Source: Ophelia neglecta
Taxonomy: Eukaryota
Assembly (NCBI GenBank): GCA_965285935.1
Contig: OZ260666.1
Coordinates: forward strand, 37,138,001-37,202,000
Direction: 5' to 3'
Length of the DNA: 64,000 nt
In this document: piece by piece, positions 41,026 through 63,967 of the stretch
How positions within the stretch are numbered: the first letter of the stretch is position 1
Layout: each line of letters starts with the position of its first letter
Program-made: the position numbers and the translations under genes
The notes under the pieces: model-generated
The model's input: the letters and a program-made list of their open reading frames with translations, nothing else
The model's database searches: none
Told to the model about the DNA's origin: nothing

Positions 41026-41201
41026 AGAAGCCAAAGACGCCAGAACCAGAACCAGAACCAGAGCCTGTCGTAGAAGAGCAGGCGCCGGAGCCTGAACCAG
41101 AACCGGAGCCCGTCACCGAAGAGCAGGCCCAAGAGCCTGAGCCTGAACCCAAAAAGCCTGATACGGAACCGCCGAAGTTTACAGAAGTCTACCAAGACAC
41201 T
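41026..41201 (+). CDS. Repeat unit 3: PEVK-like exon (one extra PE dipeptide)
   Basis: attacag| ... ACT|gttagt; 176 nt. Confidence 0.85.
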
Positions 41202-41424
41202 GTTAGTTTTGATTCTTAAACGTTTAAGATTTTAGTCTAGGTATAAATTGTTATGAATGTACTATCGTTTGTCAGTTAGGTACATACTCTGAAAGAATAC
41301 CTCTATATTCTAAGTATGTCCAAAACCGTAACGAAGAAATTGGGTGGGTCCATGAGGTACTTAGTTCTACAAAGAGTCAACTTCCCATAACACCAGATTT
41401 ATTGACGTTTATCTTCGCTTTAAG

Positions 41425-41968
41425 ACCATTGAGGTGAAGAAGAACCTTGTTCTGACTGCCAAAGTCACAGGGAAACCTGAGCCTACTGTCAAGTGGTTTG
41501 TAGACGGAACCGAGATCAAGGCAACATTCAAAATAGTAATGAAGAAAGAGAATGAAGAATGCACACTGACCATCTCAGGGGTCACCTTGAAGATGACAGG
41601 AGTATACAAATGTGTTGCCACCAACGAGGCTGGAGAAGCAGTTCACGAGGCTAAGATAACAGTCTGCGAGAAGATGGAGCCTCCAGTCTTCACACAGAAA
41701 CCAGCAAAGAAGGATGTTGTTGAGGGCAGCCCAGCTAAATTTGAGGCCAAGGTTAAAGGCGTTCCGCTTCCTGAGGTAATCTTGTACCGAGGCGAGGAAG
41801 AGGTTGTGCCGACTGAGCGTGTCACATTGACCACCAAGGAGGTGAAGGGTATTGTCCACACCATTCTCACATATGACAAGTGTGTTGTGGAGGACATATG
41901 TGACCTCAAATGTGTTGCCAAGAATCCGGCTGGAGAAGCAACTTGCACTACTACACTCAATGTGAAAC
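41425..41968 (+). CDS. Repeat unit 4: two-Ig exon
   Basis: ctttaag| ... C|gtacgc. Confidence 0.9.
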
Positions 41969-42185
41969 GTACGCATGCTTTGACGTTTAAGCATGCTTTT
42001 CAAATTTCCCAATAATTTCCAGGGTTTCTTTCATGTAAAGGTGATGCTTTGTAGGTAAAGCCAAAGAATACTATTATATATTTCAAGTATATGATTAATT
42101 GGAAAGCTCTGGCACGGAAGCAATATTTGTTTGTAAATGTTGGCCACATTTAAATTAGTTTTCTCTTCCTTGGTATTATCAACAG

Positions 42186-42470
42186 TCTATACAGAAAAAC
42201 CCACGGTAAAGAATCTAACTGATGTAGAGATCATGGAACAGGAGGATGCTGTCTTTGAGACAGAGATTACAGGGCAACCAGAACCCACGGTTGAGTGGTT
42301 CTCTGGGTCCGTCAAACTGGAGCCTTCTGATAAGGTTATTATTGAAAAAGAAGATACAAAGTGCAGACTGACACTAAAGACATGTGAAGTCAATCAGACT
42401 GGGCCCATCTCAGTGAAAGCCACAAACGATGTTGGTTCTGAGAGTTCTAAAGCCAAATTGACAGTCAAAG
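42186..42470 (+). CDS. Repeat unit 4: single-Ig exon
   Basis: tcaacag| ... G|gtatgt. Confidence 0.9.
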
Positions 42471-42777
42471 GTATGTTGTATGCGTTTGGCATTGTGTGGA
42501 CTTTCTCCTTTTATTCCCTGTTTGTCGTTTCTACTAGTGTCCTAAAGTGTATTTATTAAAGAAGTTTCTGCATGTTGATCTACTGAAGGTGAGATGGTAT
42601 AACACACGTACAAAAATCTCTTGATTCAACATTTTATTTATTGTGCAGATCATTAAATGTCATTTGCTTGTAACTAAATTCCCTCACCTTTTGTGTCTCC
42701 TTTCCGTTGGTTGCCAAATATAAGTGTGTTTTTCCATGGTTTGTCTTTCACTGTCCATAATACCTCCATGTTACCAG

Positions 42778-42900
42778 CCCCTGTTGTTGAAGAACTTGTG
42801 CCTGAAGAAGATGACACCACAGAGTTCGCTTTTTCTCTTCCTTCTCCTGAGCCTGAATTTGAAATTGCGACTGTTGAGGAAACAGTTGATATAGTAGAAG
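42778..42900 (+). CDS. Repeat unit 4: acidic linker exon
   Basis: gttaccag| ... G|gtatag. Confidence 0.82.
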
Positions 42901-43859
42901 GTATAGAAATGAGCATGACTTTCCCCGTTGCCTATGAATTTCTGATATGTTCGTTTATATTTAATAGCATCCATAAGGATTTGAACACAACTGTTGTTTT
43001 CTGTTTAACATTGTTAAGCATATAGTTTGCATACTGTCCGCGCATAGATGAAATCATTCATGACTGCTATGTGCAGTTTATTAATTGATAGTTATTTTTC
43101 CTAAATGCACATATGTAAGCTTTATGTGTTTGAAGAATAATCTTTTCAATTTTCCGTAGCATTTGTCTCCTAGTTTTATGGTAATGCTAAGGTTGCACAT
43201 CCTGTGCTCCCGAATTACCGATAGACAGAAAGTTTTGTGTCCTACATATAATGATATGGGTGTTCGGGAATGTAATGATAGTTTATTAGCCGGGATTTGA
43301 TTAGTAATAGGTAATCGAATGGCACTAGAAACCCCTCTCTCTAGTGATTTGCTTGATTGTCATCCTGCTAAGATCTGCCTTAGTCATGATTGTTTATGGG
43401 CAAACCACAGTCTTAGTTGTGTTTTCGTCCACTGTTCTCAAAAATACGGTCACAAGATTGTGATCTATGTATGGTCTGTTAACATTCCTACACAGACTAA
43501 TTGAACAGAACAAACTAGTCTTACATGTTGTCATCAGTTGTTTTATGTTCTCAAGCATGTGTCAGAAATACCCATGTTTGCCATTGGAATATGACTATAA
43601 GTGTCATATAGAAAGCAGATTCACTGTTCATTAACTGTTTATTGGAAATATGAAATACCTTAATTCTAATTCTGGTAGCATGGTTTATTTCTTCAATATG
43701 AACTTTGAAGTTGTGAAACTTAATAAGCTTAGTAATGATGGCTTTGTCTGGGGGGTAATTAATATAAATCCTCTGAAAATATATCCTTAATTTCTACTGA
43801 ACTATGAACAAGCCGAGTTTTGTTTGAATAATCATATATGGGGCCATGGGATATTACAG

Positions 43860-44029
43860 AGAAACCAAAGACGCCAGAACCAGAACAAGAGCCTTTTGTA
43901 GAAGAGCAGGCGCCGGAGCCTGAACCAGAACCGGAGCCCGTCATCGAAGAGCAGGCACCAGAGCCTGAACCAGAGCCCAAAAAGCCTGATACGGAACCGC
44001 CGAAGTTTACAGAAGTCTACCAAGACACT
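43860..44029 (+). CDS. Repeat unit 4: PEVK-like exon
   Basis: attacag| ... ACT|gttagt. Confidence 0.85.
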
Positions 44030-44258
44030 GTTAGTTTTGATTCTTAAAAGTTATAGATTGTAGTCCACTTATAAATTGTTATCATATGTATGTACTATCG
44101 TTTGTCAGTTAGATCCACATTATGAAAGAATACCTCTATATTCTAAGTAAGCCCAAAACCATAATGAAAAAAAATTGAGTGTGTCCATGAGTTTCTTAGT
44201 TCTACAAAGAGTCAGCTCCCAAAGCTCTAGATTTATTGATGTTTTTCTTCGCTTTAAG

Positions 44259-44802
44259 ACCATTGAGGTGAAGAAGAACCTTGTTCTGACTGCCAAAGTC
44301 ACAGGGAAACCTGAGCCTACTGTCAAATGGTTTGTAGACGGAACCGAGATCAAGCCAACATTCAAAATAGTAATGAAGAAAGAGAATGAAGTATGCACAC
44401 TGACCATCTCAGGGGTCACCTTGAAGATGACAGGAATGTACAAATGTGTTGCCACCAACGAGGCTGGAGAAGCAGTTCACGAGGCTAAGATAACAGTCTG
44501 CGAGAAGATGGAGCCTCCAGTCTTCACACAGAAACCAGCAAAGAAGGATGTTGTTGAGGGCAGCTCAGCTAAATTTGAGGCCAAGGTCAAAGGCGTTCCG
44601 GTTCCTGAGGTGATCTGGTACCGAGGCGAGGAAGAGGTTGTGCCGACTGAGCGTGTCACATTGACCACCAAGGAGGTGAAGGGTATTGTCCACACCATTC
44701 TCACAGTTGACAAGTGTGTTGTGGAGGACATATGTGACCTCAAATGTGTTGCCAAGAATCCGGCTGGAGAAGCAACTTGCACTACTACACTCAATGTGAA
44801 AC
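44259..44802 (+). CDS. Repeat unit 5: two-Ig exon
   Basis: ctttaag| ... C|gtacgc. Confidence 0.9.
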
Positions 44803-45011
44803 GTACGCATGCTTTGACGTTTAAGCATGCTAAACATTTTCCTGATTTCATAATAGTGGCCATGGTTTCTTTTACTTAATGGTGTTGCTTTGTAGCTAAA
44901 GCAAAAGAATACTTCTTTATATTTTAAATTTATGAATAATCTGAAAGCTCTGGCATGGAAACAATATTATCTTGGAAATGTTGGCCACATTTGAATTATT
45001 ATTCTCAACAG

Positions 45012-45296
45012 TCTATACAGAAAAACCCACGGTAAAGAATCTAACTGATGAAGAGATCATGGAACAGGAGGATGCTGTCTTTGAGACAGAGATTACAGGG
45101 AAACCAGAACCCACTGTTGAGTGGTTCTCTGGGTCCGTCAAACTGGAGCCTTCTGATAAGGTTATCATTGAAAAAGAAGATACAAAGTGCAGACTGACCC
45201 TAAAGACATGTGAAGTCAATCAGACTGGACCCATCTCAGTGACAGCCACCAATGACGTTGGTTCTGAGAGTTCTAAGGCCAAACTGACAGTCAAAG
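45012..45296 (+). CDS. Repeat unit 5: single-Ig exon
   Basis: ctcaacag| ... G|gtatgt. Confidence 0.9.
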
Positions 45297-45314
45297 GTAT
45301 GTTCTGTGTGAACA

Positions 45315-45508
45315 TGCATGTTATCGTATCACATGTCTGAATTAATATTTAAATAAAAACATATATTATCCATAGTCATGTTCTCTTAGGGAACTTGTTT
45401 GGATTTTATTTTTTAATGAATTTCAAAATGTGTATATGTTGTTCATTTATTGACAAATTTGTTTGTATTGCATGCCGACATTTTTATTGTGTTTATGTTA
45501 TCTGCATG
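45315..45508 (+). promoter_or_regulatory. Cluster of three TGCATG (RBFOX-type) intronic splicing elements ahead of the Ig exon array
   Basis: TGCATG at 45315, 45469, 45503, within ~210 nt of the donor at 45296; function is inferred. Confidence 0.45.
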
Positions 45509-46853
45509 ATCAGCTAGCTACTGTTTCAACTCGATGTTTTTTACGGAGTGCTGTTTGACATTTTCTTTGTGTGATCAACTTGTGGGTTTGTTGAATAGCC
45601 CGTAATGAAATAATTACCATGTTGAGCGGACGGGCTTAGCATCAACCAGCATATGTATTGGAACATACAATTATGGTTCTTCATCTAGATCTCCCCTCCC
45701 CACAAAAAGCTTGAGCGAATGTTACTTAACCTTTCTATGGCAGTTTAAGAAATGGGATAAAACATTAGTGGCTTGTTTGCCAGCTGCCGCGTTTTTAAGC
45801 CTCAGCAAAAACCTCGAACATTCTATATATCGGGTACTTTTAGGGACATTCTTAACAGGTGTGACGCAAAGGTATTTGTGTAAAGTATATGGCTTATTTA
45901 TTCACCATAAGGCCATGAATATAATTATCTAGTTCTAAGAAATATTCATATTATATGTTATTAATCATTGTTTCGATATTTGAACTTTGGCATCTATTGG
46001 TTTCCTTCTTAAATTGACTGTGAGTCGATGATACAGTACGGGGAAGACTGTTCACACAGCCTGCAAGCCCTAAACCTATTTATCATTTTTACACGTTAGC
46101 AGTTCCACTGACAGTTCTATGAAATAGGTATTTTGGAGTTGGATAATCATTGAATAACAGTATTAATGGTATTAATGGTTCATTTATGTAAATAAACCTC
46201 TAGGATTGATCCAGAAAATTTTATCTGAATATTGTGTGCTCATGTACGATACTTTGTATGCTGGCAATGTTGGGAACATTGATAGATGAATGCTGTTTCA
46301 TATACACGGGGCTTCATCGGATGTTATGTCGTGTCAAATTCCCTTTGTGAGCAATGTAGTACCTAGATATGACTTACTTGGATAATTGTGTTTCCATTGG
46401 CGCAACATTTTCACCTGCAATTATATCCCCAGAAACTCCAATTTCAGAACTTTACTGATGCCAAACAAAGGCATAAATATATCATTGATGTATGTGTTTA
46501 CAAATATGTATATACATTTCTATTATAATTGTCTGAAATTAATTTTCGAACGTCACGTCTTTTAGGGCTTTACCTGAATAGTCACGGGATTAAAAAACAC
46601 ATTGTTGTGAGGCTGTAGATAAATTGAATAAGTCAATGCTTTTAGTTAAGGCTAAAATGTGACTATAAGTGGGCTTTCATAATGAAAGAATATGCTTTGA
46701 AGATAAAATCTTGTCCTAGGCATATATTCTTTTGTTTAAGGTTAGGCTTTGGTATTCCTTTGTATATAGCTCTTTGCTTTACGTTGTCTTCATGCAATAG
46801 TATTTTCCCTTTAAGAAAATTCAAAGAAAAGCAAATTCACACTTTCATTACAG

Positions 46854-47138
46854 TGAAATGTCTGAAGCCCACACTTTCAAAACTCGAAAACGTACTGATA
46901 ATGGAACAAATGGATGCTGGTTTTAAAACAGTTGTAACAGGAAAGCCTGTGCCCAAAGTGGATTGGTTTCGAGGTGTTGTACAACTTGCCCCCTCAGAGA
47001 CAGTTGTCATTGAGACCGATCATGAAGAGTGCACACTCATTTTGAAGTCCTGTCAAGTTTATCAGACTGGATCCATTTCTGTGAAAGCAACCAATGAGGC
47101 TGGTTCAGCGAATGCAGTTGCAATGCTCACTGTACAAG
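46854..47138 (+). CDS. Ig array exon 1
   Basis: ttacag| ... G|gtccag; 285 nt. Confidence 0.8.
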
Positions 47139-47322
47139 GTCCAGTCACTAAAAATATACTGTTTATCATATATGTAGTTATTGTTACTTCTCCTGGAAGG
47201 CTGTGTCATCTACCCGATTATGCTGTTTTAAATTAAAAGACCTTTTCCTAACAATAGTCCATTACTACTTGTTCCATAACCATACCAATTATTATGTTTT
47301 TCTTTCGTATTGTGATATTTAG

Positions 47323-47607
47323 AATTAACAAAGAAACCTACAATATCCGGGTTGATGGATGTAGAAATCTTAGAAGAGAAAGATGCAAAATTTGAAATAA
47401 ATGCAATTGGTAAACCTGATCCAGTTGTAGAATGGTTCCTTGGCAATACAAAGTTAGATCCATCTGATAGAGTGACTATATCTCAGGATAGTTTGTGTCA
47501 TCGGCTTATCATACACCAATGCGGAATGAATGATTCGGGTAATGTGACTGCCAAAGCATCCAATAAAGCTGGTGTCTGTACCGAAGAAGCTAAATTGATT
47601 ATCATAG
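47323..47607 (+). CDS. Ig array exon 2
   Basis: atttag| ... G|gtttga; 285 nt. Confidence 0.82.
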
Positions 47608-48331
47608 GTTTGAACATTTTTGTATTTTTCGGATTATGTTGCTATCATGTCCTTCTTTATTACATATATTATAAGATGCAAGAAAAACAGCTTGACAGTT
47701 CTGTACAGTCCCTGGCTTCCATTTCTGAAAGCACGTCTGCTATTTCGAATTCTTCTTAGAATGAATATAGCTTGATACTTTCTTACACACCTTGGCTTGC
47801 CTTTCTGGAAGCGCATCTTGCATATCTTTGTCTTTTACTTTCGGTTTCCCACACAATTATTAGTGGCAAATAAATGAACTAGGAAATTGATTCAATCAGT
47901 ATGACTATTTCTATAGATGAAAGACTCATAGGATTAAATTGTACGAAACCAAGCATTACATTGTGCTTGTATAGAATAAATTGATCATTATAGTTATTGC
48001 TATACTATTGCGTGATTAAGAGTTGATCAATGCTCTAAGGCTGGCTTGATTTGTATGATTCTATAAACATTTTCCTGTCCACTTTTTGCACCCACATTCC
48101 TTGGAACTTCGTATTTAAGATAAGTGAAAAGGAATTGCCCTTTGGTACGAATTTCAAATTATTTTCTCTATTTCACTCTGCGTTCAAGCTTTCTTTACTG
48201 ATAATTTCTAGTGATAGTAAAAGTGTCACAACTGTCAACCATCTGATGCTTCAGCTCGTTAACTTTCGTAAGAATTATTATTTCTATCTTTTCTGTTTAA
48301 TCTATTAATTAGAAAGGGTATATTTATTTAG

Positions 48332-48616
48332 AATTGTCTGAAGAACCATTTTTGACCAGACCGCAAAATGTCCAAATAATGGAGAATGAAAGCGCATCGT
48401 TTGAAACAACTGCGACTGGGAAGCCGCCCCCTGCAGTAAAATGGTTTATTGGGGCTAATGAAATTGTATCATCTAATGATTTCATATGCCAAAAGGATGA
48501 CCAAAAATACACCTTGACAATTCAGAAATGTCAGGTGGAACACAGTGGAACCATTACAGCAGAGGCGATGAACACAGCTGGTTCCTATAAAGTATCCAGT
48601 AATATTCTGGTCAAAG
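48332..48616 (+). CDS. Ig array exon 3
   Basis: atttag| ... G|gtttga; 285 nt. Confidence 0.82.
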
Positions 48617-48779
48617 GTTTGATATTAGTATATGAAACATCAAGGGAAAGCTATATGGTTTACGATTAATAATCAGCGTTTGACATTATGTTAAAAGCCA
48701 ATATTATCTCATAGCATTACTTTACAAAAGCTTTGGTACATACTTTTTATTATTGTATTAACCAGTATTCTATCAACAG

Positions 48780-49064
48780 AAATCTTGGAATCGCCCACTC
48801 TTTCTGCCATAAATGATGTTCAAATAACAGAAACAGAAGATGCCCTATTCAAAACAATCGCAACTGGGAAGCCTAAACCAAACGTAGAGTGGTTTATAGG
48901 CAATACATTGCTGGAAGAATCTGACATTGTTCAAATAGAGAATGACAATGACACGCATGTTCTCATGTTAAAGTCATGCGTTGTGCAACAGTCGGGTCAT
49001 ATCAGGGTGACAGCGTGTAACAAGGCAGGGTTTTGTGCAGCAGAGGCTAATCTGATGGTCAACG
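48780..49064 (+). CDS. Ig array exon 4
   Basis: caacag| ... G|gtgtgt; 285 nt. Confidence 0.82.
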
Positions 49065-49173
49065 GTGTGTTGTTGTTCATTTCTCCTTTCTAACTTTATA
49101 CACTTGCCAAACTATTGATTGTCTGTTAAGGACAAATGATGTAGTAAAAATATATAATTTTCTTTTACAACAG

Positions 49174-49458
49174 AGGCACTCTGTGCGCCCACTGTGACAC
49201 AACCCCGAAATGTAGTAATTACTGAACAAGATGATGCTATATTTGAGACCACAGCCACTGGCAAACCTGAGCCTATCATTGAATGGTATAAAGGTTCAAA
49301 AAAACTGACCAACAGTGATAATGTCGTTATTGACGATGTCGAAAATACCAGTAAAATAGTATTGAAGAATTGTCAAGTGGAAGATGGAGGACATGTCACA
49401 GTTAAAGCCACCAGTATTGCTGGAACCTGTTCTGCTGAAGCCAGGCTAACAGTGAAAG
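49174..49458 (+). CDS. Ig array exon 5 (type A)
   Basis: caacag| ... G|gttata; 285 nt. Confidence 0.82.
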
Positions 49459-49564
49459 GTTATAGCTATGCACTTTAAACCATAAAATTTCTGTTATGTA
49501 TTTACAAAAAATATATCTCACAAACTAATTCATTACAGGCATACATTGCTCATATCGTTCACAG

Positions 49565-49849
49565 AAATCCTGGAGTGTCCCGAAGCCACTAGCCCAGCAG
49601 ATGTCGAGATATTCGAAAATGACAATGCTGTGTTTGAAACTAGTATAAAAGGAAGGCCTGAACCTCAAGTGCAATGGTTCTGTGGCCCTAATATATTAGT
49701 GGCATCTGATGAAATCCTTATTGAAAGGGAAGGCTCAGTGCATAGGATAACATTGAAATCATGCCAGCTAGACCAGTCTGGGACACTACAAGTGAAGGCA
49801 TCAAGCAAAGCGGGAACAGTAACTAGGGATGCTTTACTTGTGGTGAAAG
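49565..49849 (+). CDS. Ig array exon 6 (type B)
   Basis: tcacag| ... G|gtgttt; 285 nt. Confidence 0.82.
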
Positions 49850-50063
49850 GTGTTTTGAAACTTTTTTCCTGATGATGTTTTTGTGCATTCAAGCAAGTTA
49901 CAAGAATAAGTTTTTATATCACCTATCAGATATGTGATAAATATTTGGATGGTCGAACCATCTTTTTTAGGAATTTTGTTTAGTGTCAGACAAAGGCATT
50001 TGGTAAAACTACCCATCAGTTTTTTTGTGCAGCTTCCAATATCACATGTTTGTATTTATTTAG

Positions 50064-50348
50064 AAATAACTGATGAGCCAACCATGAAACAGTTTGATGA
50101 TGTTGAAATTATGGAATTTGAAAATGCTGTTTTTGAAACCTCCTCCTCTGGCACGCCGAAGCCAATTGTTGAATGGTTCTATGGCTTAAACAAACTCAGG
50201 CCTTCGAACCGAATCATTATTGAAGAAAGAGATAACATTCATAGATTGGTGATTGAGAGTTGCAATATTGAAGACTCAGGGCTCATAACTGCTAAGGCAA
50301 CTAATATTGCAGGATCTTGTTCAAAAGTTGCAAAGGTGACAGTGAAAG
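50064..50348 (+). CDS. Ig array exon 7 (A)
   Basis: atttag| ... G|gtaaac; 285 nt. Confidence 0.82.
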
Positions 50349-51247
50349 GTAAACATTTTTGCTGTTATTTAATGCACATATAGTTTGATTATCTAAACCC
50401 TGATAATCCCCCAGTTTGACTTATTGCTATCTCTGTTCTACATTATACTAGGGCCTCATATATTATAACTAGAGCCACCTAAAGTTAATAAAGTGATTGT
50501 CAAGCATGTCTCCTTCCATCATGGCCACCAAGTAGTGATATTGCTTATAAATTGATCCGATGAGCAATAAACAATAAATGTCACCGGCTGCCTGCATCAG
50601 CATAGTCAGGCGTGGTGAAAAAAAAGTGCTCTCCTTTGGTGGGAGTAAAAATAATCTTCTGCAACCCGCATTACAGTTTGTTTCCACATCACGCTTGACA
50701 TTCTAAAGAAAACCATGTGTCAGTGGTTCGATGACTAGTCTTATTACTTTACCAGTTAGCCAAAAGTCACACATAAATGCCTTAAAGTCAAGTAGGAATG
50801 GTAACATTAACGGAAGTTATTATAACTAAGCACTATAAACACTTGTTTTGCTTTAGAGTTGCCATGCGTTAGTGGGGCAAAACCAAGTGCCCTCACAATA
50901 TATTTTTTGTGGAATCTAAAATCTCTCCGCCCTCACTCTATACTGTATGAATCAGAGGAGGTGTCTGAGAACCTCCTGTTTCTGGACCTAAGGATAAAGC
51001 CCCACCCCCCACCCCTAACCCGTCTTATTTGTTAAAACAAAATACCCGAGAATCACTTTATCAACTTGGGGTGGCCTGGATTAATTTTGCAATTAAAATA
51101 AGATATCAAATATGCTCGGCTTGTTTTTAGTCATAGACCCGACTCTATGTACTGCCACTTCACTCATATGTGTTAAGTGTCAGCATGAGCAAATCATTCA
51201 TGACCGTTAAAAGTTTAACTGTTAACAGCAAATTGTTTTTCGAATAG

Positions 51248-51532
51248 AAATCCTAGAGTCTCCTTCTTTGACAAAACCAAAAGCGATGACAATATGGGAA
51301 ATGGAAGATGCCTCGTTTCAAACAATTGTATGTGGGAAACCAGAGCCTGACGTCCAGTGGTATTTTGGAAGCGACCTCTTAAACCCATCAGAAACTTTTG
51401 AGTTTGAAAAAGAGGATAATGTGCATAGGTTGATAGTAAAGTCATGTCAGCTGCACATGTCTGGAACAATTCAGGTCGTAGCTACAAATAAGGTTGGGGA
51501 GGAATCTTGTGAAACCAATTTAATGGTTAAAG
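51248..51532 (+). CDS. Ig array exon 8 (B)
   Basis: gaatag| ... G|gtgcat; 285 nt. Confidence 0.82.
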
Positions 51533-51685
51533 GTGCATATGAATTCTGTAGTAGTCAACATTTAACACAATTTATTTTAATTATTAAACTTATTTTTTAA
51601 ACACCATCGGAAAGTCCTCTGGGTACGGCCCTCCACTGTATCAGGTTTCCCATTTCCTATAATTTGTATATTTTAATTAACATAG

Positions 51686-51970
51686 AACAAGAAATGGCAC
51701 CAACTTTGACCCAAATAAGAAACGTGACAATTATGGAAAACGGACAGGCAGTTTTTGAGACCTCTACTACTGGTAAACCAATACCGTCTGTGGAATGGTT
51801 TCATGACCTGGCACTTGTTCGGCCTTCTGAAGATATCATAATGGAGGAAATTGGAAACAACCACAGACTAATATTGATGAGATGTCTAATTGATGACGCT
51901 GGATGTTACACTGTAAAGGCATCTAATGTGGCTGGATCATGTCTGGCTAAGGCTGAACTTACAGTCAAAG
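51686..51970 (+). CDS. Ig array exon 9 (A)
   Basis: acatag| ... G|gttgac; 285 nt. Confidence 0.82.
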
Positions 51971-52074
51971 GTTGACTTCACTTTACTAATAGAAAATAGC
52001 AGTACAATATCCATAATTTTGAAATCGGTTCATGCAAATGATTACATTAACTCTGTTACTTATTCACATAACAG

Positions 52075-52359
52075 AAATTCTAGAGAAGCCAAAGGTGACA
52101 AAACCAGCTGATATTGAAATAGTTGAGATGGAAGACGCAGTGTTTGAATCTGAAATAACTGGATACCCAGAGCCCCATATTGAATGGTACAGTGGACCCA
52201 ACTTGCTAGAAGGGTCTGACAATGTTTTGATTGAAAAATGTGCCAATATTGGTCGGCTGGTACTGAAATCCTGTTCAATGGAGCAGTCTGGAACTATTGA
52301 AATAAGAGCAACCAATGAGGCTGGTACGACATTCAGCGAGGCTTCTCTTGCAGTGAAAG
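52075..52359 (+). CDS. Ig array exon 10 (B)
   Basis: taacag| ... G|gtagaa; 285 nt. Confidence 0.82.
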
Positions 52360-52488
52360 GTAGAATCATGACTCGACCTTTTACACAATTTGTCGTCAAA
52401 ACCAGACCAACTTTTTGAATTCTTGTCTACATGCCCTGTTTGTTTTCTAGAATTATCCAAGAATATATATAGTGTGTTTATGTTATAG

Positions 52489-52773
52489 AAAAATTTGAAA
52501 CACCGAGACTAACAAAGCCAGGGCACGTAACTGTTAATGAACAGGAAGATGCTGTTTTTGAAACAGCATCAACAGGAAAGCCTCTCCCTGAAGTGGAATG
52601 GTACCACGGGCTAGTAAAACTGAGGCCTTCAGAGAGAGTAATTATTGAACGAAACAACAACATCCACAGGCTTGTTATTAAAAAGTGTCAGGTGAAAGAA
52701 AGTGGGCAAGTCATTGTGAAGGGAACCAATATTGCCGGATCATGTTGTGAACAGATGAGTTTCACTGTGAAAG
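52489..52773 (+). CDS. Ig array exon 11 (A)
   Basis: ttatag| ... G|gttgtt; 285 nt. Confidence 0.82.
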
Positions 52774-53106
52774 GTTGTTCTAATGTATATTTTTCTGTCA
52801 CTCCAATCATCATATAAAATCATGCCTTATTTCTGCTTTTGTCTTGCTGGGTGTTCTAGTGCAAAATTACACCAGATTTTGACATAAAAGAAAATGAGAA
52901 TTCTAGATCCCCCTAGCTTACATTTTGCAAGGTCATCTACCAATAATTACTGAAATAAATTGTTGTTTTACTTACGAATTGCATAGCATATTTGACCAAC
53001 TTCTAGTTTGAGATCTCCATTTCAAAAAAGTGCATTACATAATGTCTTTCTGGTTATGCAATTCCATGTTCTGTCATACAAATACCTTTTACATGCACAA
53101 AATCAG

Positions 53107-53391
53107 AATTATTGAAGAAGCCAGAAGTTTCAAAGCTGGCCGACCTGGAAATAGTTGAGATGGAAGAAGCTGTGTTTGAAGCTGATGTAAGCGGGAGGCC
53201 AGATCCAGTCGTTGAATGGTATCGTGGACCAATGTTGCTTGAACCATCACAGCAGGTCTCTGTCGATTCAACTGGCATTAAACACAGATTGAGGTTACAA
53301 AACTGCGCTTTGGATTACACCGGAGACATTGTAATAAAAGCTTCCAATGAGGCTGGTACAACATCCAATTCTGCAAGGCTAATCATAAGAG
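53107..53391 (+). CDS. Ig array exon 12 (B)
   Basis: aatcag| ... G|gtatat; 285 nt. Confidence 0.82.
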
Positions 53392-53822
53392 GTATATTTG
53401 TCATTTGTGATACTCAAATTCCCATTCTCCGGGAAGGTAATAGCCATGGTTTATGCGTTTGGTTTCATAATCTCTTAAATGAATTCCCCAACAGTCGATG
53501 CATTAGAATGATAATATAAGCAGTTTATTTGACAGAACTAAATGATAGTTTAATGTCATGCCTTGTTGATAAAAACAACACTTTGTTATATTGATCTATT
53601 GGTAACACCAAATCTAGTGACCCATGATTAAATTTAGATAATCAAAAGTCTGTTTATACTCGTGATCACAAACAAGTCTACATTTGAAAAACAAGTACAA
53701 TCATTCCCATTGGAGTATCAATGAAAAAAAATTCCAAAAGATTCCATGGAACCAGTATGTTTTATGTAATTAAATTCCATGAAAAAGGCCCTTTTCAGAA
53801 TGGTTTTTGTTTATGTTTAAAG

Positions 53823-54107
53823 AAAGGAAAGAATGCCCGACACTTAGCAAGCTCAGAAATGTAGTCATTGCCGAGCACGAGGAGGCTGTCTTTGAAACCA
53901 AATCAACTGGGAAACCCCCACCAGTAATAGAGTGGTACTGCGGTCTCGTGAAACTGAGCCCATCAGAACTTGTTGAAATCCAGAATATTGAGAATAAACA
54001 CAGGCTTGTATTGAAGAATTGTCAAGTGAGACAGTCAGGAGATATCACAGTAAAAGCCACCAATGACGGCGGCACATGTTCTAGGGATGCAGATCTCAGT
54101 GTCAAAG
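53823..54107 (+). CDS. Ig array exon 13 (A)
   Basis: ttaaag| ... G|gttcct; 285 nt. Confidence 0.8.
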
Positions 54108-54225
54108 GTTCCTGCCTTCTACTTTCGATTCACCGAGTTTAAGAGTCTTCATCGTTGTTTATTTAATTTTCCTTTTAGGACCATTATTATTAGTTATTCT
54201 AATACTATTCATCACAATTTCATAG

Positions 54226-54510
54226 AAATACTGGAGAAGCCAGTTATAACGAAACCCATGGATGTGGAAATAATGGAAAATGACGATGCCACATTTGAAG
54301 CAAATGTATCAGGCAAGCCAGAGCCAAAAGTAGAGTGGTACTGTGGACCAATAAAACTAAACCCATCTGAGCATGTACTGATAGTTAATGATGGTCAGCT
54401 CCACAGACTGACATTGACAACTTGTCACCTAAACCAGTCGGGTACAATTGAAGTCAAAGCTTTAAGCAAAGCCGGAACTGTCTCTACCGAAGCATTCCTA
54501 ATTGTTAAAG
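54226..54510 (+). CDS. Ig array exon 14 (B)
   Basis: tcatag| ... G|gtaact; 285 nt. Confidence 0.82.
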
Positions 54511-55173
54511 GTAACTGTCTACTACATTTTTATAATCTGCTCACTTACCTTTACCACCATCTGCTCAGATGGCACGGATATTATTCACCCTCATCTTTGC
54601 TTTTTTGATTTTGCTCAATGTCAAGCTATTTGATCCATCGCAAATTGATGATTAATCAGATTGACGCATTGTAAGTTCCTGAGATCAATTCGGAACATTG
54701 CATTTTGAAATAACCTTAGGGGTGCAAATTACTGCCAACACTGACATCAGCATTGTAAGATAATATTGTGCATTTTGCATTCAGGATCTTTTGGCTTTTG
54801 ATTTTTAAAGCGCCCTGATGATTTTTGATCAGGGGATAGTCTTAATTGATAATGCTCTGTCTGCCAGGAATTCAATGTCGTTATGAAATATTACTTTATG
54901 ACAAATTTTGTTATGTGGATAATTAATTGCTTGCCGCTTCCCTGCCCAGTGAAAAAAATAAGTACTAGTGATTGATTTGCCATCCAATGTACCATTATCA
55001 TGTGATATGGTTCAGGACATTTCTTTTTCTGCTCACCAATATGCTTCTACACACTCTTGGTCCTTGGGACTTTTGGTGTATCAAATTATTAGCTATTGTA
55101 GTACGTACTGTTTTTAATCTTCTTCATAATTGAGTATATCAAATAGTGAATGATTTGTGTGTGTTCAATTAAG

Positions 55174-55467
55174 AACGAGAGGAACAACAGGATGCCCCAA
55201 CGCTTACTGAGCTAAAGCATGTTGTCATTGTCGAACACGAGGATGCAGTGTTTGAGACTGTATCAACTGGGAATCCGGCCCCAGTGATTGAATGGTTCTG
55301 TGGTATGGTCAAACTCAACCCATCACCGCACATTGATATTCAGCATACTGAAACCATTCATAGGCTTGTGTTAAGGAACTGTGAAGTGAAACAGTCAGGA
55401 GCTATCACAGTGAAGGCAACTAATGTCGCAGGCACTTGTTATGCAGAAGCAGATTTCATGGTCAAAG
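55174..55467 (+). CDS. Ig array exon 15 (A)
   Basis: attaag| ... G|gttatt; 294 nt. Confidence 0.78.
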
Positions 55468-55596
55468 GTTATTATTTTTATATATCTAGTAGAAAAAAAT
55501 CCAAAGAAACAGAACAGTAGACAGATGGTTGATTATTGAGTTGATATAACAAATTTAAAAGAGCATGTTTTACTAATCAAAAAATCTCTGCCACAG

Positions 55597-55881
55597 AAAT
55601 ACTGGAGGTGCCATTAATATCACAACCATTTGACGTCCAAATACCAGAGCTGGAAGATGCTACATTTGAAGCACATGTATCAGGGAAACCAGAACCAAAT
55701 GTCGAGTGGTTCTGTGGCCCTATAAAACTAAAGCCATCCAAACATATATTGATAGTCAAGGATGGAGAGCTCCACAGACTGACATTGAGAACCTGTCAGT
55801 TTAATCAGTCAGGCACAATTGAAGTAAAAGCTTCCAACAAAGCCGGCACTGCATCCAATGAAGCTCAGCTGATGGTCCAAG
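55597..55881 (+). CDS. Ig array exon 16 (B)
   Basis: ccacag| ... G|gtaact; 285 nt. Confidence 0.82.
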
Positions 55882-56367
55882 GTAACTTTATAGATTGTAT
55901 TTATAGCCGCCTCCCTCCCAGGTGCTTTTTATGACAAAAAAAGAAATAGACCCCATCATCTATTTCATTATATGAGATGACATTTTACTCAAAATTTAGC
56001 ATTTAAATTCAAATAATTGGTTGAAAATGGTTGTAGATCTTCGTTTTTTCCAATTCCTTAATTACTTGGAAACCTTGGTGATATGAACCTTTATTTGGCC
56101 TTTTCTGCTGCTACCCGTTCCAATGAGCACCATTTTATGTAATGATATGTGCCTCGAACGTATTTGAGCATTCACTCAGCACAATTAAATAGTCTGTCTC
56201 TTCACCTAAATGTTTATAATCGCCTTTAGTTCCTTAGTCTGAGGTTTATAACTGGCTATGCGTCCCATTATGCGATGGAAATCCCAAATGAACATTAACG
56301 TATAAAGTATGATTACTGGTTTAAATTTGTTGAATTATAAAAAAACATTTTTTTTGTGTTCATTAAG

Positions 56368-56661
56368 AACAAGAAGCACACCAGGAGCCCCCAACTTTGA
56401 GCAAACCCAATGGTGTTGCCATTAATGAGCATGAGCAGGCTGTCTTTGAGACAGTATCGAGTGGCAATCCAACACCAGTGATCAAATGGTTCTGTGGTCT
56501 GGTTAAACTGGCCCCTTCAGGGCTCGTTGACATCCAAAATACGGGGAATACTCATACACTTACGTTGAAGGATTGTGAAGTGAGACAGTCAGGAGATATC
56601 ACTGTGAAAGCCACTAATGTCGCAGGCACTTGTTATGCCGAAGCAGATTTGATAGTCAAAG
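56368..56661 (+). CDS. Ig array exon 17 (A)
   Basis: attaag| ... G|gttatc; 294 nt. Confidence 0.78.
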
Positions 56662-56795
56662 GTTATCACTTTTTTGCACTAAATGTGATTAAATCTGAAT
56701 AGAACGACAGCAGACTCATAAATAATTAGTAAGCGAAATAAATACTTTCTAAATGTCATGGTTTACTAATAATCAGCTTTAATGACATGCCACAG

Positions 56796-57080
56796 AAATT
56801 CTGGAGATGCCTGTTGTTTCACGACCATCTGATGTCCAAATACCGCAACTCGAGGATGCCATATTTGAAGCATATGTGTCAGGGAGACCAGAACCAAAAG
56901 TCGAGTGGTTCTGTGGTCCACTCATACTAAATCCTTCTGAACATGTTTTGATAGATAATGATGGTGAGCTCCACACACTAACCTTAAAAGCATGTCAATT
57001 AGGACAGTCTGGTACAATTGAAGTCAAGGCTACAAACAATGCAGGAACTTCATCCAGTGGGGCACATCTAATTGTTCAAG
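56796..57080 (+). CDS. Ig array exon 18 (B)
   Basis: ccacag| ... G|gtaaaa; 285 nt. Confidence 0.82.
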
Positions 57081-57177
57081 GTAAAATAAATTAATAAATA
57101 TGGAATCGATTCCTTACATTTGGTTACTAATGCTGGGCTATGAATAAAATATTTGAACTCATTTTTGTTCCAATTAG

Positions 57178-57471
57178 CACGAGAGGAACAAATTGAGTCC
57201 CCAACTTTGACCAAGCCGAATAATGTTGCCATTACTGAGCATAAGGAGGCGGTCTTTGAGGCAGTATCAACTGGGAAACCTGCACCAGTGATAGAGTGGT
57301 TCTGTGGTCTTGTCAAACTCAACGAATCAAAACTTGTTGACATCCAGAATATTGGGAACCATCATAGGCTGGTTTTGAGAAATTGTCAAATGGCTCAGTC
57401 AGGGGAAGTCACAGTAAAAGCCACAAATGCTGCAGGATCTTGTACATCAAAAGCAGATTTTAATGTCAAAG
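57178..57471 (+). CDS. Ig array exon 19 (A)
   Basis: aattag| ... G|gttcat; 294 nt. Confidence 0.8.
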
Positions 57472-57725
57472 GTTCATCTTACTCTAATTTTTCTTGCTAT
57501 TCTATATTTTTAAATTGATTTGTTTTGGTCGTTGACACCATATCCTAGGCAAAAAATGATCACAATCCCTGCAAGCTATGTCTACAATTAGCAAGCCACA
57601 TTTCCACATCTTTTGAACGGTGTATCAAGAAAACTAGGCATGACTTCATCATGTTCAGATGATATTGATTGTAAAAGCATCATTGAGGCAAACTTATACA
57701 CTAATACTATTTTTATACACAATAG

Positions 57726-58010
57726 AAATACTGGAGTTGCCTCTTATTACAAGACCATCTGATGTGGAAATTATGGAAATGGAGGATGCCATATTTGAAG
57801 CACATGTATCAGGGAAGCCAGAACCAAGTGTAGACTGGTTCTGTGGTCCTATAAAACTCAAACCAACTGAGCATGTACTAATAGATAATGATGGTGAGCT
57901 TCACAGTCTGACATTAAAAAGCTGCCAGTTGAATCAGTCTGGTACGATTGAAGTCCAAGCTTCAAATAAAGCTGGTACTGAGTCCAAAGAAGCACACCTT
58001 ATAGTTTTAG
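57726..58010 (+). CDS. Ig array exon 20 (B)
   Basis: caatag| ... G|gtaact; 285 nt. Confidence 0.82.
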
Positions 58011-58202
58011 GTAACTACGCTAATTTTGTTATGTATTACTGAGCCATTTTTACCTCTTGCCACAGATAATGGTTCAAACCATGGGCTGGTTGTTGTGTAT
58101 GCGCTGCTATGTTTTGGCACTTCATATCTTGCATAAGAATATACTGGCCTAATGGTTTCACTAGGTATATGTTGTTTAAATTGATCTTTTTGTTCAATTA
58201 AG

Positions 58203-58496
58203 AACACGAGGAACAACAGGAACCTCCGACTTTGACCAGGCCCAAAAACTGTGACATTGCCGAGCATGAGCAGGCAGTCTTTGAGACAGTATCGACTGGG
58301 AATCCAGCCCCACTGATTGAGTGGTTCTGTGGTCTGGTTAAGCTGGGCCCTTCAGAACTAGTTGATATCCAGAATACGGAGAACATTCATAAGCTTGTTA
58401 TGAGGGATTGTGAGGTGAAACAATCAGGCGAAATAACTGTAAGGGCCACAAATGTGGCTGGAACGAGTTCAGCCAGGGCAGATCTCAGCGTCAAAG
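58203..58496 (+). CDS. Ig array exon 21 (A)
   Basis: attaag| ... G|gttatt; 294 nt. Confidence 0.78.
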
Positions 58497-58615
58497 GTTA
58501 TTGTCAACTTCAATTTAAAGAAAATGTTTTTCTAAGATGACCTTATGCATATGCCTCATGAATTTAAATAATGAATATTTATTGTATACTAACAGTCCAA
58601 TACTATCCATAATAG

Positions 58616-58900
58616 AATTACTGGAGCTGCCCCTAATAACAAAACCATCTGATGTCCTAATAATGGAAATGGAGGATGCCATATTTGAAGCACATGTATC
58701 AGGGAAGCCAACACCAAATGTAGAGTGGTTCTGTGGACCAATGAAACTAATGCCAACTGAACATGTACTGATAGATAACGTTGGTGAGCTCCACAGACTG
58801 ACATTGAAAACTTGTCAGTTAAATCAGTCAGGTACAATTGAAGTCAAAGCTTCTAATAAAGCTGGAACCGAATCCACAGAAGCACATCTAAATGTCCAAG
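58616..58900 (+). CDS. Ig array exon 22 (B)
   Basis: taatag| ... G|gtaact; 285 nt. Confidence 0.82.
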
Positions 58901-59263
58901 GTAACTTGATTAATTCATATGTATATGCTGATTTGTGCCCTGTCGCAACGATTTAATACATCAGAGTTATTCATTAGTCGCAATTCAGGGCTGGACAATT
59001 TTCAGTACATATGTGTAAATTGGACTTTTGAATAGTGAATTATCCTTAGGTCTATAAGATTAAACTATTTTTTCTATTTTTAAGTGAAGGTGTGTGGAAA
59101 ATCATAAAATGCCTACATTCTATTTAAATTGGTAAACCTATGTGTGGAATGGTTGATACCACCAGTCGGTGTATGGCTGTGAACAATTAAATGTTTTTGC
59201 AATGTCGTTTGATGCTAACCATAATATAATGACAATTTTCAATATTTGTGTCTTCCACGAAAG

Positions 59264-59557
59264 AGCAAGAAGAAAAAAGTGTAGATCCGTCATTGACCAG
59301 ACCTACCAGTGTTGTTATAACTGAGCATGAGGATGCTGTATTTGAGGTGTCTTCCTCTGGGACACCAAGACCTTTTGTAGAATGGTTCAATGGTCGGATA
59401 AAATTGAAACCTTCAGAGCATATTTTGATTTTGGATAATGACAACTGTCACCGCCTTGTTATAAGAGACTGCAAGGTGGAAGACTCTGGCCACATTACAG
59501 TAAAGGCGTGGAATGTGGCCGGTGAATTCTTTGAGGAGGCAGAGCTGACTGTAAAAG
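59264..59557 (+). CDS. Ig array exon 23 (A)
   Basis: cgaaag| ... G|gttaat; 294 nt. Confidence 0.78.
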
Positions 59558-59720
59558 GTTAATTTCCATTTTTTGAATTGAATGATGCAACATCAGATTC
59601 AATTTGCCCTCCTTTTTCATGTTTGCTCATGCTCTTGCATGTCTATGGCACATACATGACAGGTGAGTAATAAATGTACATTTTATACTAACATATCTAT
59701 TTTACCTATACCCAACCCAG

Positions 59721-60014
59721 AAATACTTGAGATTCCAAAAGTTTCCAAGCCCATGGACATTGAAATAGTTGAAATGGAAGATGCAGTATTTAAGGCTGAG
59801 GTAACAGGGGTGCCAGAGCCAGAGGTGAGCTGGTACTGTGGGCCTGTTACACTACAACCATCTGACAGTGTTGGTTTTGAAAATCATGGCAAACTCCATA
59901 AGCTGGTCTTGAAGCACTGTAAATTACAGCAGTCAGGAACCATTGAGATCCGGGCTTCTAACAAAGCAGGTTCAGCATTTAGCGAAGCAAACCTGCTAGT
60001 GAATGCAGTGAAAG
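59721..60014 (+). CDS. Ig array exon 24 (B, 3-aa C-terminal insertion)
   Basis: acccag| ... G|gtatat; 294 nt. Confidence 0.82.
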
Positions 60015-60201
60015 GTATATTAAGATATGTCTCACTATTCTTTAAACCAGAAAATCATAATTTATTTGCTCTAAGACAGAGTGGCCTGATTATCATCAAA
60101 ACATTGATACCACATGGTATAGTTACGATTAATAAGTTGAAAGAATAGTTTGTCTTTTGTTTGATTGAATCCCATAAAAATATTTTTTATTTGAATTTAA
60201 G

Positions 60202-60486
60202 AGCAAAACACACTACCAACTTTGAGCAAGCCAAGAGACGTGGAAATAAAAATACACGAAAGTGCTGTCTTTGAAACTGAATATGCAGGCAATCCCAGTC
60301 CTGTCATCGAATGGTTTAGAGGCATGGTCAAAATGAAACCTTGTGAAAATGTCTTTATTGAAGACCATGGCAGTTCATGTAGACTTATAATGAAAAATTG
60401 TCAAATGGAAGACGCTGGCCGAATCACTTTGAAGGCAACTAATCAGACTGGCAGCTGTTCAGTGGAAGCAGATCTGAACGTTAGAG
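60202..60486 (+). CDS. Ig array exon 25 (A)
   Basis: tttaag| ... G|gtgtgc; 285 nt. Confidence 0.8.
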
Positions 60487-60607
60487 GTGTGCCATCAATT
60501 CTAAATCCATTTATCACTTTATTAGTTTTTGCCATTATAACAAAGCTAAGGTATGTTTCAAAAATATCCTTGTTTGTCCTTTAAACTGTTAACAAATTTT
60601 GATTTAG

Positions 60608-60892
60608 AAATTCTGGAGAAACCCGAGGTTACGAAACCAGCCAATATTGAAATATTTGAAATGGAAGAAGCATTTTTTGAAGTTCAAGTAACAGGAAAAC
60701 CAGAACCGATTGTGCAATGGTATTGTGGATCCCTCTTATTAGAAACAGCAGAGAATGTTCTGATTCACAAAAGTGACAAGACACATAGATTGATATTGAA
60801 ATCTTGTCAACTGTCACAGTCCGGAACCATACAAATAAGAGCTTCTAATACAGCGGGAATGGCATCCAATGAAGCCAAGCTCAATGTTAAAG
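60608..60892 (+). CDS. Ig array exon 26 (B)
   Basis: atttag| ... G|gtgtat; 285 nt. Confidence 0.82.
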
Positions 60893-61149
60893 GTGTATAT
60901 TATATCCAATATGATATAGTTGTAATGACCCTTAAGGGAATACGTCACATGTCATGTGAATAACATATTGTCCATTATTTTACCCATTATGCTTCTCAGT
61001 GAAAAAGTACCAGCTTGAACTAAAATAATATTGATTTGTGTCTGATAATTTGCTCTCCAAATATATAAATGAATTTGAGGAATCTATTTGTGCGATTCGT
61101 CCAAAAGGATATTTTTGTTGAGTTCCAATTATTTTTGTAATCTGCCTAG

Positions 61150-61434
61150 AACTACATGAAGCACCAATGTTGACCAGGCCTAGAAATGTGGAAATATTTG
61201 AACACCAAGAGGCAGTCTTTGAAACAACCTCACTTGGGAACCCTAAGCCTGTTATAGAGTGGTTTGTTGGCCTTGCAAAACTAAGGCCGTCTGACAAAAA
61301 CATAATAGAAGAAACTGGCAACAGCCATATACTGACATTAAAGGACTGTCAAGTTGAAGATTCCGGACGTATCACAGTCAAGGCAACTAATGTGGCTGAT
61401 ACATGTTCTGCTGAGGCATATCTTACTGTCAAAG
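61150..61434 (+). CDS. Ig array exon 27 (A)
   Basis: gcctag| ... G|gtcttt; 285 nt. Confidence 0.82.
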
Positions 61435-61553
61435 GTCTTTCTTTCATACCCGTATTTTACATTTTCGTTAACAGCTAAAATACATGCTATAACATTTTCT
61501 ATGATCTAGTTTATGAATGTCCACTACTAACTTATTACATAACCATAATACAG

Positions 61554-61838
61554 AAATATTGGAGAAACCCGTTGTTACTAAACCAACTGATGTAGAAATT
61601 CTTGTGATGGGAGATGCCATATTTGAAGCCGAGGTAACAGGGAAGCCCGAGCCCGATGTACAGTGGTGCCGGGGACCGATCACACTAAAAGCATCTGAAC
61701 GGGTCTTGATTGATCAGATTGGCAACATCCATAGACTGGTACTAAAATCCTGCAAATTGGAACATTCCGGCACCATTGAAGTGAAAGCCTTCAATGCAGC
61801 TGGAACTGCATCATGTGAAGCTAGCCTCAAAGTGAAAG
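61554..61838 (+). CDS. Ig array exon 28 (B)
   Basis: atacag| ... G|gtgcaa; 285 nt. Confidence 0.82.
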
Positions 61839-62051
61839 GTGCAATGAACATCAATTACAATTTCTACATATTAAGTTAAATTCATATCGAGTTATAGCGT
61901 TACTAAAGCTTTCTTAATAGAGAAAAAATTATAAAAGGGAAAGTTGTCACATTCAAAAAATTGCAATTTCCAATGTAAAGATCAATGTGGAAAGCTTGGC
62001 AACCTGGTGCCATAATCAGATTATTATATTCACATTTGGTATTTCATTTAG

Positions 62052-62336
62052 AGCAAACTGATGTTCCAATCCTGACTAAACTAGCAGACATCGAAATCAT
62101 GGAAAATGAAGATGCTGTATTTGAAACATTGGCATCAGGAAAACCCTTGCCTATTATAGAATGGTTTAAGGGCATGGTGAAATTGAAGCCTTCACGTAGA
62201 ATATTAATAGAGTGTACTAACAATGAACATAAATTAGTGATAAGGGAGTGCCAAGTGGAAGATACCGGACATGTGACCGTGAAAGCCTCCAATGTCGCTG
62301 GTGCACATTCTGAACGCGCCGATCTTTTAGTGAAAG
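62052..62336 (+). CDS. Ig array exon 29 (A)
   Basis: atttag| ... G|gtcaat; 285 nt. Confidence 0.82.
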
Positions 62337-62424
62337 GTCAATATCCGAGTTTTCTGTATTAATCTTCCAATTTTGAAAACAAAAGTACAGAAATAACATA
62401 CTAACAATTTTTTATTTGTAATAG

Positions 62425-62709
62425 AAATAGTAGAGGCACCCAAACTAACTAGGCCAGCTGATGTAGAAGTAACCGAAACAGAGGACGCCCTCTTTGAAAC
62501 GGAAGTAGAAGGAATTCCAAAGCCTGAAGTTGATTGGCTCTTTGGAGATGACATAGTTACACCTTCCAGTAAGGTGCTGATTGAGCAGCAGGGGAGTATT
62601 CACCGATTGAAGATGCGCTTTTGTGAGTTAGAGCAGTCAGGAATCATCATAGTAAAGGCATCAAATAAAGTGGGTGTAGCCACAGTTGATGCTAAACTGG
62701 AAGTGAAAG
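62425..62709 (+). CDS. Ig array exon 30 (B)
   Basis: taatag| ... G|gtatgg; 285 nt. Confidence 0.84.
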
Positions 62710-63740
62710 GTATGGAAACTGCCTTGACAATGTCCTTGTCAAGTGTATATACCGAATGAAGCTATTACTAGCGGAGATTTAAATTATAGTGCATCACAAA
62801 ACATTCATTGTATGCTCACTCTGGCAGGGAGTAGTACAATAGTTTTGTTCTGCATACATTAACAGAAAATTGTACAAATTAAGTAAAAAAAATGCTTACC
62901 TGCTGATTTGCCGTTTGCTCTCCTGTATTATATTTCATCCGGCAGTGCAAGCTAATTTAAAGCTGGAGCCTTCTCTCCCACCATGTATATTGTTTTCCCT
63001 GATATCATTTTTCTCAATGCTTGATGACCGATCGGTGAAAGTTTTCCATTACATTTTTTCTCAATATACAAAGGAACATTTAATTTGAGTGTCAACGGAT
63101 AGACCACCAAAGCCTGATATATACTTCCTACATATTTGTGACACGTATTATCGGCATTAAGGTGGCACTAGTAGATAATGGTAAACTCTAGATAAGCTTT
63201 TGCTTCAAAATCATATGTATGATAAGGAGCCAGGACCTGATAATTTATATCTTGTATGCTTGCTCTACAAACTAGCTAAGGACAAGACTTTTCTTTGTGG
63301 AGGAAGGGCATAGTGGGTTTTTCTGTATATAATTCTCTTTTAGGGACTTCTCTGAAGAGTGCAGGCTTTTTGTATATTTCGTGTTAAGCATTGTCTTATC
63401 AGTGACTTTGATTATTTTTAACGAACAGGCGTTATGGACTCATTTCATTAGCTGCTATCATTTGAAAACCATTACTATACAACTTAACTGAAAGCTACCT
63501 TTTCACCTCTATTAATGCATCATATGATGGCATCAACTGCTCTCTTTTCAGGCTTCTATTTCTTCTTCTGTTCAGAAGAAAATCTAATTCTATTTCACAA
63601 ATACAACAGCTAAATCGAATTTACCGCAACTGACACCTAACAAGTACCAATGTATATGAATAGCATGGCATAATAACACGGACTTGATAACAACACTACC
63701 AACGTGTTACTTGAATTGAGAAAGAAGCCACTTATTACAG

Positions 63741-63967
63741 AAAAGCCAAAAACTCCAGAGCTTGAGCCAAAGCCAGTGCCCGAGCCGGTGGTTGAAAAGC
63801 AGGCCCGAGAGCCTGAACCAGTAACCGAGGCGGAAGTTGAGGAGCTGGCACCAGAGGCCAAACCAGAACCTGAGCCAGTAGTGGAAGAACAGGCCCCAGA
63901 GCCTGAACTAAAACCCATAAAGCCTGACACAGAACCACCTATGTTTACAGAAGTCTACCAAGACACT
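63741..63967 (+). CDS. PEVK-like exon, paralogue of the repeat-unit PEVK exons
   Basis: attacag| ... ACT|gttagt; EKPKTPELEP...PDTEPPMFTEVYQDT. Confidence 0.87.

Follow-up and report, generated by a model that had tools for sequence, protein, structure and literature searches.

Thirty single-Ig exons and their splice sites

The stretch analyzed here (the window) comprises 64,000 nucleotides (nt) of Ophelia neglecta DNA without any N (GenBank assembly GCA_965285935.1, contig OZ260666.1, positions 37,138,001 to 37,202,000 of the forward strand), and positions given below are those of the window. Between 46854 and 62709, its plus strand carries a tandem array of 30 immunoglobulin (Ig) exons within a predicted titin/connectin homolog. 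As an earlier note on this DNA had described, the exons are intact paralogs that each encode a single Ig domain: 24 are 285 nt and six (exons 15, 17, 19, 21, 23 and 24) are 294 nt long, all 30 are bounded by AG and GT, all are in phase 1-1, and none contains a stop codon. Every exon matched the Pfam I-set family (PF07679; best E 8e-20) with one complete domain, and the total coding length is 8,604 nt or 2,868 codons (2,868 aa). The same exon-intron layout, with scattered single-nucleotide polymorphisms, was present in contigs from three DNA runs of one sample. Glu is the junction codon at nearly all array acceptors. Together with the uniform phase 1-1, this means that every subset of exons stays in frame, and that any number of consecutive exons, or all 2,868 aa at once, could be omitted with no harm to the protein.

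The internal splice sites of the array are weaker than those of the other exons of the same gene. Control donors were taken from that gene using hidden Markov models (HMMs) built from its own Ig and fibronectin type III (Fn3) domains; each donor was set at the commonest distance, in codons, from the end of the domain, blind to intron positions +3 to +6. This procedure recovered all 30 array donors and 124 other phase-1 donors of Ig and Fn3 exons. G at intron position +5 (+5G) was found in five array donors (exons 2, 3, 4, 25 and 30) compared with 111 of the 124 controls (Fisher 1e-14, where the array exons are paralogs and so not 30 independent events, and the control introns come from one gene). 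GTRAG donors were absent from the array (0/30) and made up 64 of the 124 controls; the earlier note had listed the same five exons and had seen neither GTAAG nor GTGAG, which is exact. A position weight matrix trained on the controls (leave-one-out) gave the array donors a median of 1.0 bit, compared with 5.2 bits for the controls; the array median thus lies at the 5th percentile of the control scores.

Specifically, positions +3, +4 and +5 carry 0.04, 0.03 and 0.07 bit in the array and 0.59, 0.43 and 2.04 bit in the controls, and the share of +5G in the array (17%) is close to that of G in the intron background (15%). Such near-zero information would fit a lapse of selection on the splice sites, in which losing one Ig domain of 30 is harmless and in frame and inclusion is stochastic and unregulated; the symmetric exons and their shared Glu junction codon fit it as well. 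However, the gene's other series of tandem single-Ig exons (+94 to +109 kb) shows no comparable relaxation, and the subfamily-specific donor hexamers, acceptor tract and branch motifs described below argue for maintenance, although their conservation goes only marginally beyond shared ancestry. We regard relaxed selection as unlikely.

On the exonic side of the donors the contrast is reversed. A at -3 reaches 87% in the array and 52% in the controls, A at -2 97% (29/30) and 40%, and G at -1 100% (30/30) and 74%. This pattern, together with a median array intron length of 163 nt, supports an alternative in which the 30 exons are constitutively joined in order, recognition having moved to the exon side (AAG/GT, the slash marking the exon-intron boundary) and to strong branch sites, with short introns spliced by intron definition. 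Nevertheless, exons of the same gene that share these properties retain +5G: it was present in 27 of 34 control donors with exonic xAG, compared with 4 of 29 in the array, and in 45 of 50 control introns of up to about 300 nt. The donor contrast thus holds after matching for exonic xAG and short introns, and architecture alone does not explain the loss of +5G. Moreover, total complementarity to U1 is still lower in the array (5.5 compared with 6.1 matches, p = 7e-4).

Acceptors differ in the same direction. CAG ends 10 of the 30 array acceptors and 53 of 67 controls, whereas AAG, which the earlier note had reported for several exons, ends six (exons 13, 15, 17, 21, 23 and 25) and 3 of 67, respectively; the pyrimidine content 5' of the acceptor is 0.61 in both sets. 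Exons 17 and 23 (56368-56376 and 59264-59272) contain a second NAG nine bases into the exon (AACAAGAAG/ and AGCAAGAAG/), and such tandem acceptors could yield 285-nt or 294-nt versions of these exons.

All 30 U1 gene copies that were read have the canonical 5' end ATACTTACCTG, which makes GTAAGT the best-matching donor in this species, and no variant at U1 position 4 was found in the genome. A variant U1 matched to GTAACT or GTTAT was rejected on these grounds; therefore, the absent donor consensus is not matched by a variant small nuclear RNA (snRNA). U12-type (minor) introns, for which an RTATCCTT donor and a TCCTTAAC branch site would be expected, were also rejected: the array donors are GTTAT, GTAACT and the like, and the branch motifs are U2-type TACTAAY (flanks read by eye). 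The U1 snRNA genes form tandem arrays at G000:C5:105.6-106.5 Mb with a period of ~1,356 bp and three main variants, all with the canonical 5' end.

A predicted titin homolog as host gene

The analysis was extended to 60 kb upstream and 100 kb downstream of the window. The same strand carries Ig exons, exons rich in P, E, V and K (PEVK) that flank the array, and Ig-Fn3 repeats from about +110 kb. Open frames and HMMs built from the exons of the locus itself placed ~178 domains of Ig type and 72 of Fn3 type between -57 kb and +164 kb, all on the same strand. By this domain composition, the host gene is a predicted titin/connectin homolog of >220 kb with both I-band-like and A-band-like parts. 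The two parts have been described together in chordates and, as a mixed form, in lophotrochozoans (PMC12063666; PMC12198301), and the gene resembles the lophotrochozoan 'mixed' titins in uniting an I-band-like (Ig, PEVK) and an A-band-like (Ig-Fn3) part (PMC12063666). Judged by its I-set units, its place in a giant PEVK/Ig-Fn3 gene and its layout of one domain per phase 1-1 exon, the array would be a tandem-Ig spring segment of the titin/connectin family.

Matches of more than 100 bits to the array Ig type were confined to this gene, comprising the 30 exons, five upstream T exons and a few flanking exons. A search of the array-exon profile against 1.84 billion representatives, which is silent on proteins outside that library, returned no orthologous array; the hits were all generic Ig giants scoring 26-53 bits per domain, compared with 115-140 for the array itself.

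Upstream of the array, five near-identical 2.8-kb units (32400-45300), duplicates much younger than the array, each have the order PEVK-a, two-Ig exon, T exon (285 nt) and PEVK-b. In unit 5, the array occupies the place of PEVK-b, and the next exon, at 63741, is of PEVK-a type. The PEVK-b donors of units 1-3, the three that were read, are AAG/GTATAA and likewise lack +5G. The features of the array and its borders are listed in Table 1.

Table 1. Exons and introns of the array and its flanks in window coordinates; a slash marks the exon-intron boundary.
Feature	Position	Strand	Remarks
T5, last T-type single-Ig exon of the upstream 2.8-kb units (285 nt)	45012..45296	+	acceptor CAG; donor AAG/GTATGT (consensus-like), which would serve if the array were skipped
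Entry intron (1,557 nt)	45297..46853	+	without docking-type complementarity to array introns; three GCAUG in the first 210 nt
Exon 1 (285 nt)	46854..47138	+	donor AAG/gtccag; clusters with T exons in the tree
Exon 2 (285 nt)	47323..47607	+	donor TAG/gtttga (+5G)
Exon 3 (285 nt)	48332..48616	+	donor AAG/gtttga (+5G)
Exons 4-14 (eleven of 285 nt)	48780..54510	+	starts 48780, 49174, 49565, 50064, 51248, 51686, 52075, 52489, 53107, 53823, 54226; +5G in exon 4 only
Exons 15-24	55174..60014	+	15 55174-55467 (294 nt), 16 55597-55881, 17 56368-56661 (294 nt), 18 56796-57080, 19 57178-57471 (294 nt), 20 57726-58010, 21 58203-58496 (294 nt), 22 58616-58900, 23 59264-59557 (294 nt), 24 59721-60014 (294 nt)
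Exons 25-30 (six of 285 nt)	60202..62709	+	60202-60486, 60608-60892, 61150-61434, 61554-61838, 62052-62336, 62425-62709; +5G in exon 25 (gtgtgc) and exon 30 (gtatgg)
Exit intron (1,031 nt)	62710..63740	+	no docking signal
PEVK-like exon 3' of the array	63741..63967	+	acceptor ttattacag/AA, phase 1, which would serve if the array were skipped; probable 3' end at 63967 (/GTTAGT, phase 0)

Duplication history and selection

The array is an old expansion of B-A exon pairs under purifying selection. From exon 4 on, two types alternate, the even exons being of A type (ILExP start) and the odd exons of B type, and the two types form separate clades in the tree. The central clades are well supported, both for A (exons 14, 16, 18, 20 and 22; 98/90) and for B (exons 13, 15, 17, 19 and 21; 100/98), which indicates that five B-A pairs, from 13-14 to 21-22, were copied as units. 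Exon 1 groups with the T exons (95/81). Synonymous divergence (dS) in the closest exon pairs is 0.41-0.67, with a ratio of nonsynonymous to synonymous divergence (dN/dS) of 0.12-0.44, and the median proportion of synonymous differences (pS) over all pairs is 0.75. No exon has decayed, which bears out the earlier suggestion that the exons are under selection. Because the duplicates are old and dN/dS is low, the coding sequence has long been kept while the intron side of the donors lies at background composition; +5G had time to arise in the array and did not.

Some non-consensus features are shared within subfamilies. The donors of the central A-type clade are GTAACT or GTAAAA (GTAACT in four of the five exons), and those of the central B-type clade are GTTAT-like, with GTT at +3 in nine of the ten B-type exons 5-23. 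Additionally, the central B-type exons have a common acceptor tract, ttgttcaattaag/AAC, and the rest of each central-clade intron is unalignable. Identity of the donor hexamers at +3 to +6 within the two subfamilies is 0.80 and 0.60, compared with 0.33 and 0.32 at +7 to +30, which speaks for constitutive use of the sites. Given a pS of 0.3-0.6 between copies, the sharing of hexamers and acceptor tract is suggestive and goes only marginally beyond ancestry.

The tandem homologous Ig exons of equal size also recall the exon 4, 6 and 9 clusters of Dscam1, which are tandem paralogous Ig-coding exons, and the earlier note had considered a choice of one exon from 30 guided by a docking sequence in intron 45297-46853. 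Neither sequence matching nor duplex energy gave a docking signal above controls. In blastn-short comparisons of the flanking introns (45297-46853 and 62710-63740) with the 29 internal introns, reverse-complement matches were no better than same-strand matches and were scattered, with no single site. When 40-nt windows of the flanking introns were paired with the 150 nt that precede each exon, real and reversed windows gave the same duplex energies (best -19.4 and -20.3, respectively). Moreover, unlike in Dscam1, each array exon encodes a whole domain with its own linker, in what would be an intracellular spring protein, and there are two alternating types, whose parallel duplication in pairs 13-14 to 21-22 implies tandem use. 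Because no complementarity signal was found and the A and B exons were duplicated together, mutually exclusive choice was rejected as very unlikely.

Possible conditional inclusion of the array

The two sites that bound the array (Table 1) are consensus-like and both in phase 1. Joining 45296 to 63741 would keep phase 1 and would place a T-type Ig exon next to a PEVK-like exon. We tentatively favor a reading in which the array may be included conditionally and under regulation, as in the vertebrate titin I-band, en bloc or in B-A steps, as an optional spring segment. In this reading, the segment grew long ago in the I-band-like part as units of two exons (B-A) were duplicated next to a single T-type Ig exon. 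Where internal splicing is repressed or runs poorly, the two strong outer sites would join and give a short spring; where internal splicing is supported, the B-A pairs would be included all together or in graded number, giving a longer and more compliant spring.

Several observations weigh against conditional inclusion. Long-lasting purifying selection on all 30 exons indicates that translation of every one of them is frequent enough to be of consequence. The branch-site motif CTAAY, at -55 to -8 of the acceptor, occurs in 12 of 29 array introns and 3 of 59 control introns (p = 6e-5), and the longer ACTAAY in 9 of 29 and 2 of 59, respectively. Eight of these nine lie in B-to-A introns, whose GTT donors are the weakest and which are generally shorter (88-899 nt). 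The enriched CTAAY, the near-invariant exonic AAG and the short introns could be a compensation that makes splicing efficient, and these features, along with the low dN/dS and the absence of decayed exons, support constitutive joining. No clear enrichment of UCUU, PTB, Rbfox, CELF, TIA, hnRNPA1, UAGG, U-run or G-run motifs was detected in the array introns. That the donors are atypical, as the earlier note held, stands within the gene; outside it, the two myosin introns that were read, too few to weigh, both lack +5G, and the control is restricted to one gene. A search of sequencing runs for this stretch gave the three DNA runs of one sample and no RNA run; their contigs are genomic, retain the introns and lack splice joints, and the listed joints reflect cross-matches between paralogs, at 24-30 mismatches per 100 letters. 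With exon 16 as query, a word search for transcript-derived protein fragments of 52-165 aa gave no match, a result that is silent about longer proteins.

Constitutive joining nevertheless leaves the A-to-B introns without branch-site compensation: ACTAAY occurs in only 1 of 13 of these introns, which are a little longer, begin with GTAACT-like donors and terminate in TAG or AAG. Considering also the retention of +5G in comparable exons of the gene, we judge constitutive joining, the main alternative, to be possible but somewhat less likely than conditional inclusion.

In regard to regulators, RBM20-type UCUU clusters were not found: UCUU occurs at 5.9/kb in the array introns and 6.5/kb in the control introns, below the shuffle expectation. 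YGCY in array introns is modestly above shuffle (75 compared with 54±8). The first part of the entry intron (45297-45510) has three GCAUG, one of them a UGCAUG at +19, compared with a single one at about +100 in the introns after T1-T4; this trio is a possible Rbfox-type element at the entry of the array. UGCAUG occurs at 0.99/kb in control introns (about +94 to +164 kb) and at 0.14/kb in array introns, a difference for which duplicated units may account in part.

A further, rather speculative extension of conditional inclusion is that the array might have a splice-site grammar of its own, with donors reduced to AAG/GT and the subfamily hexamers GTAACT and GTTAT, TACTAAY branch sites where a short intron leads from B to A, and TAG or AAG acceptors in the A-to-B introns. 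The B-A pair would then be the unit of inclusion, and a single factor specific to a muscle type could include or omit as much as 2,868 aa of spring, as an independent parallel in invertebrates to the control of titin by RBM20.

In the vertebrate titin I-band, each exon encodes one Ig domain in symmetric phase. The array resembles that region in lying beside PEVK-like exons in a putative elastic part, in its duplicated super-repeat units and in having strong outer sites that could join across. Unlike it, the array has donors that lose +3 to +5 wholly, enriched branch motifs, no enrichment of UCUU and a super-repeat only two domains long; it also belongs to an invertebrate lineage, and its skipping is putative. 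The size of the I-band springs of vertebrate titin and Drosophila Sallimus (Sls) is set by exon skipping (PMC3575840; PMC12063666). Sallimus, likewise from an invertebrate, is an I-band titin in which exon omission determines the length of the spring (PMC12063666), as it would in the predicted host gene, but the parts that can be omitted there are a handful of very large PEVK exons and not 30 single-Ig exons.

If inclusion of the array varies, it would provide a clear case outside vertebrates and insects of a titin homolog whose spring length is tuned via single-Ig cassette exons. The cis-signature, 30 consecutive exons without a consensus donor in a gene with +5G in 90% of comparable donors, is legible from the genome itself, which makes the array a compact model for the joint inclusion or skipping of many weak exons in a row; it would also help to locate optional spring segments in unannotated invertebrate genomes. 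If instead the exons are constitutively joined, they would be a useful natural example of donors that work without an intronic match to U1 beyond GT.

Other features of the locus and genome were also recorded. The same gene contains single open exons of 5,739 codons (window coordinates -9598 to 7618) and 2,585 codons (+82088 to +89842), and the in-window part of the former gave no credible Pfam match. An AT-rich intron holds a tandem repeat of ~24 nt at 10064-10648, one frame of which reads TVYYTGNT. Elsewhere in the genome, a complete myosin head domain is encoded without introns in a long open frame (G000:C8:42860759-42862801), whereas the other myosin genes are split into many exons.

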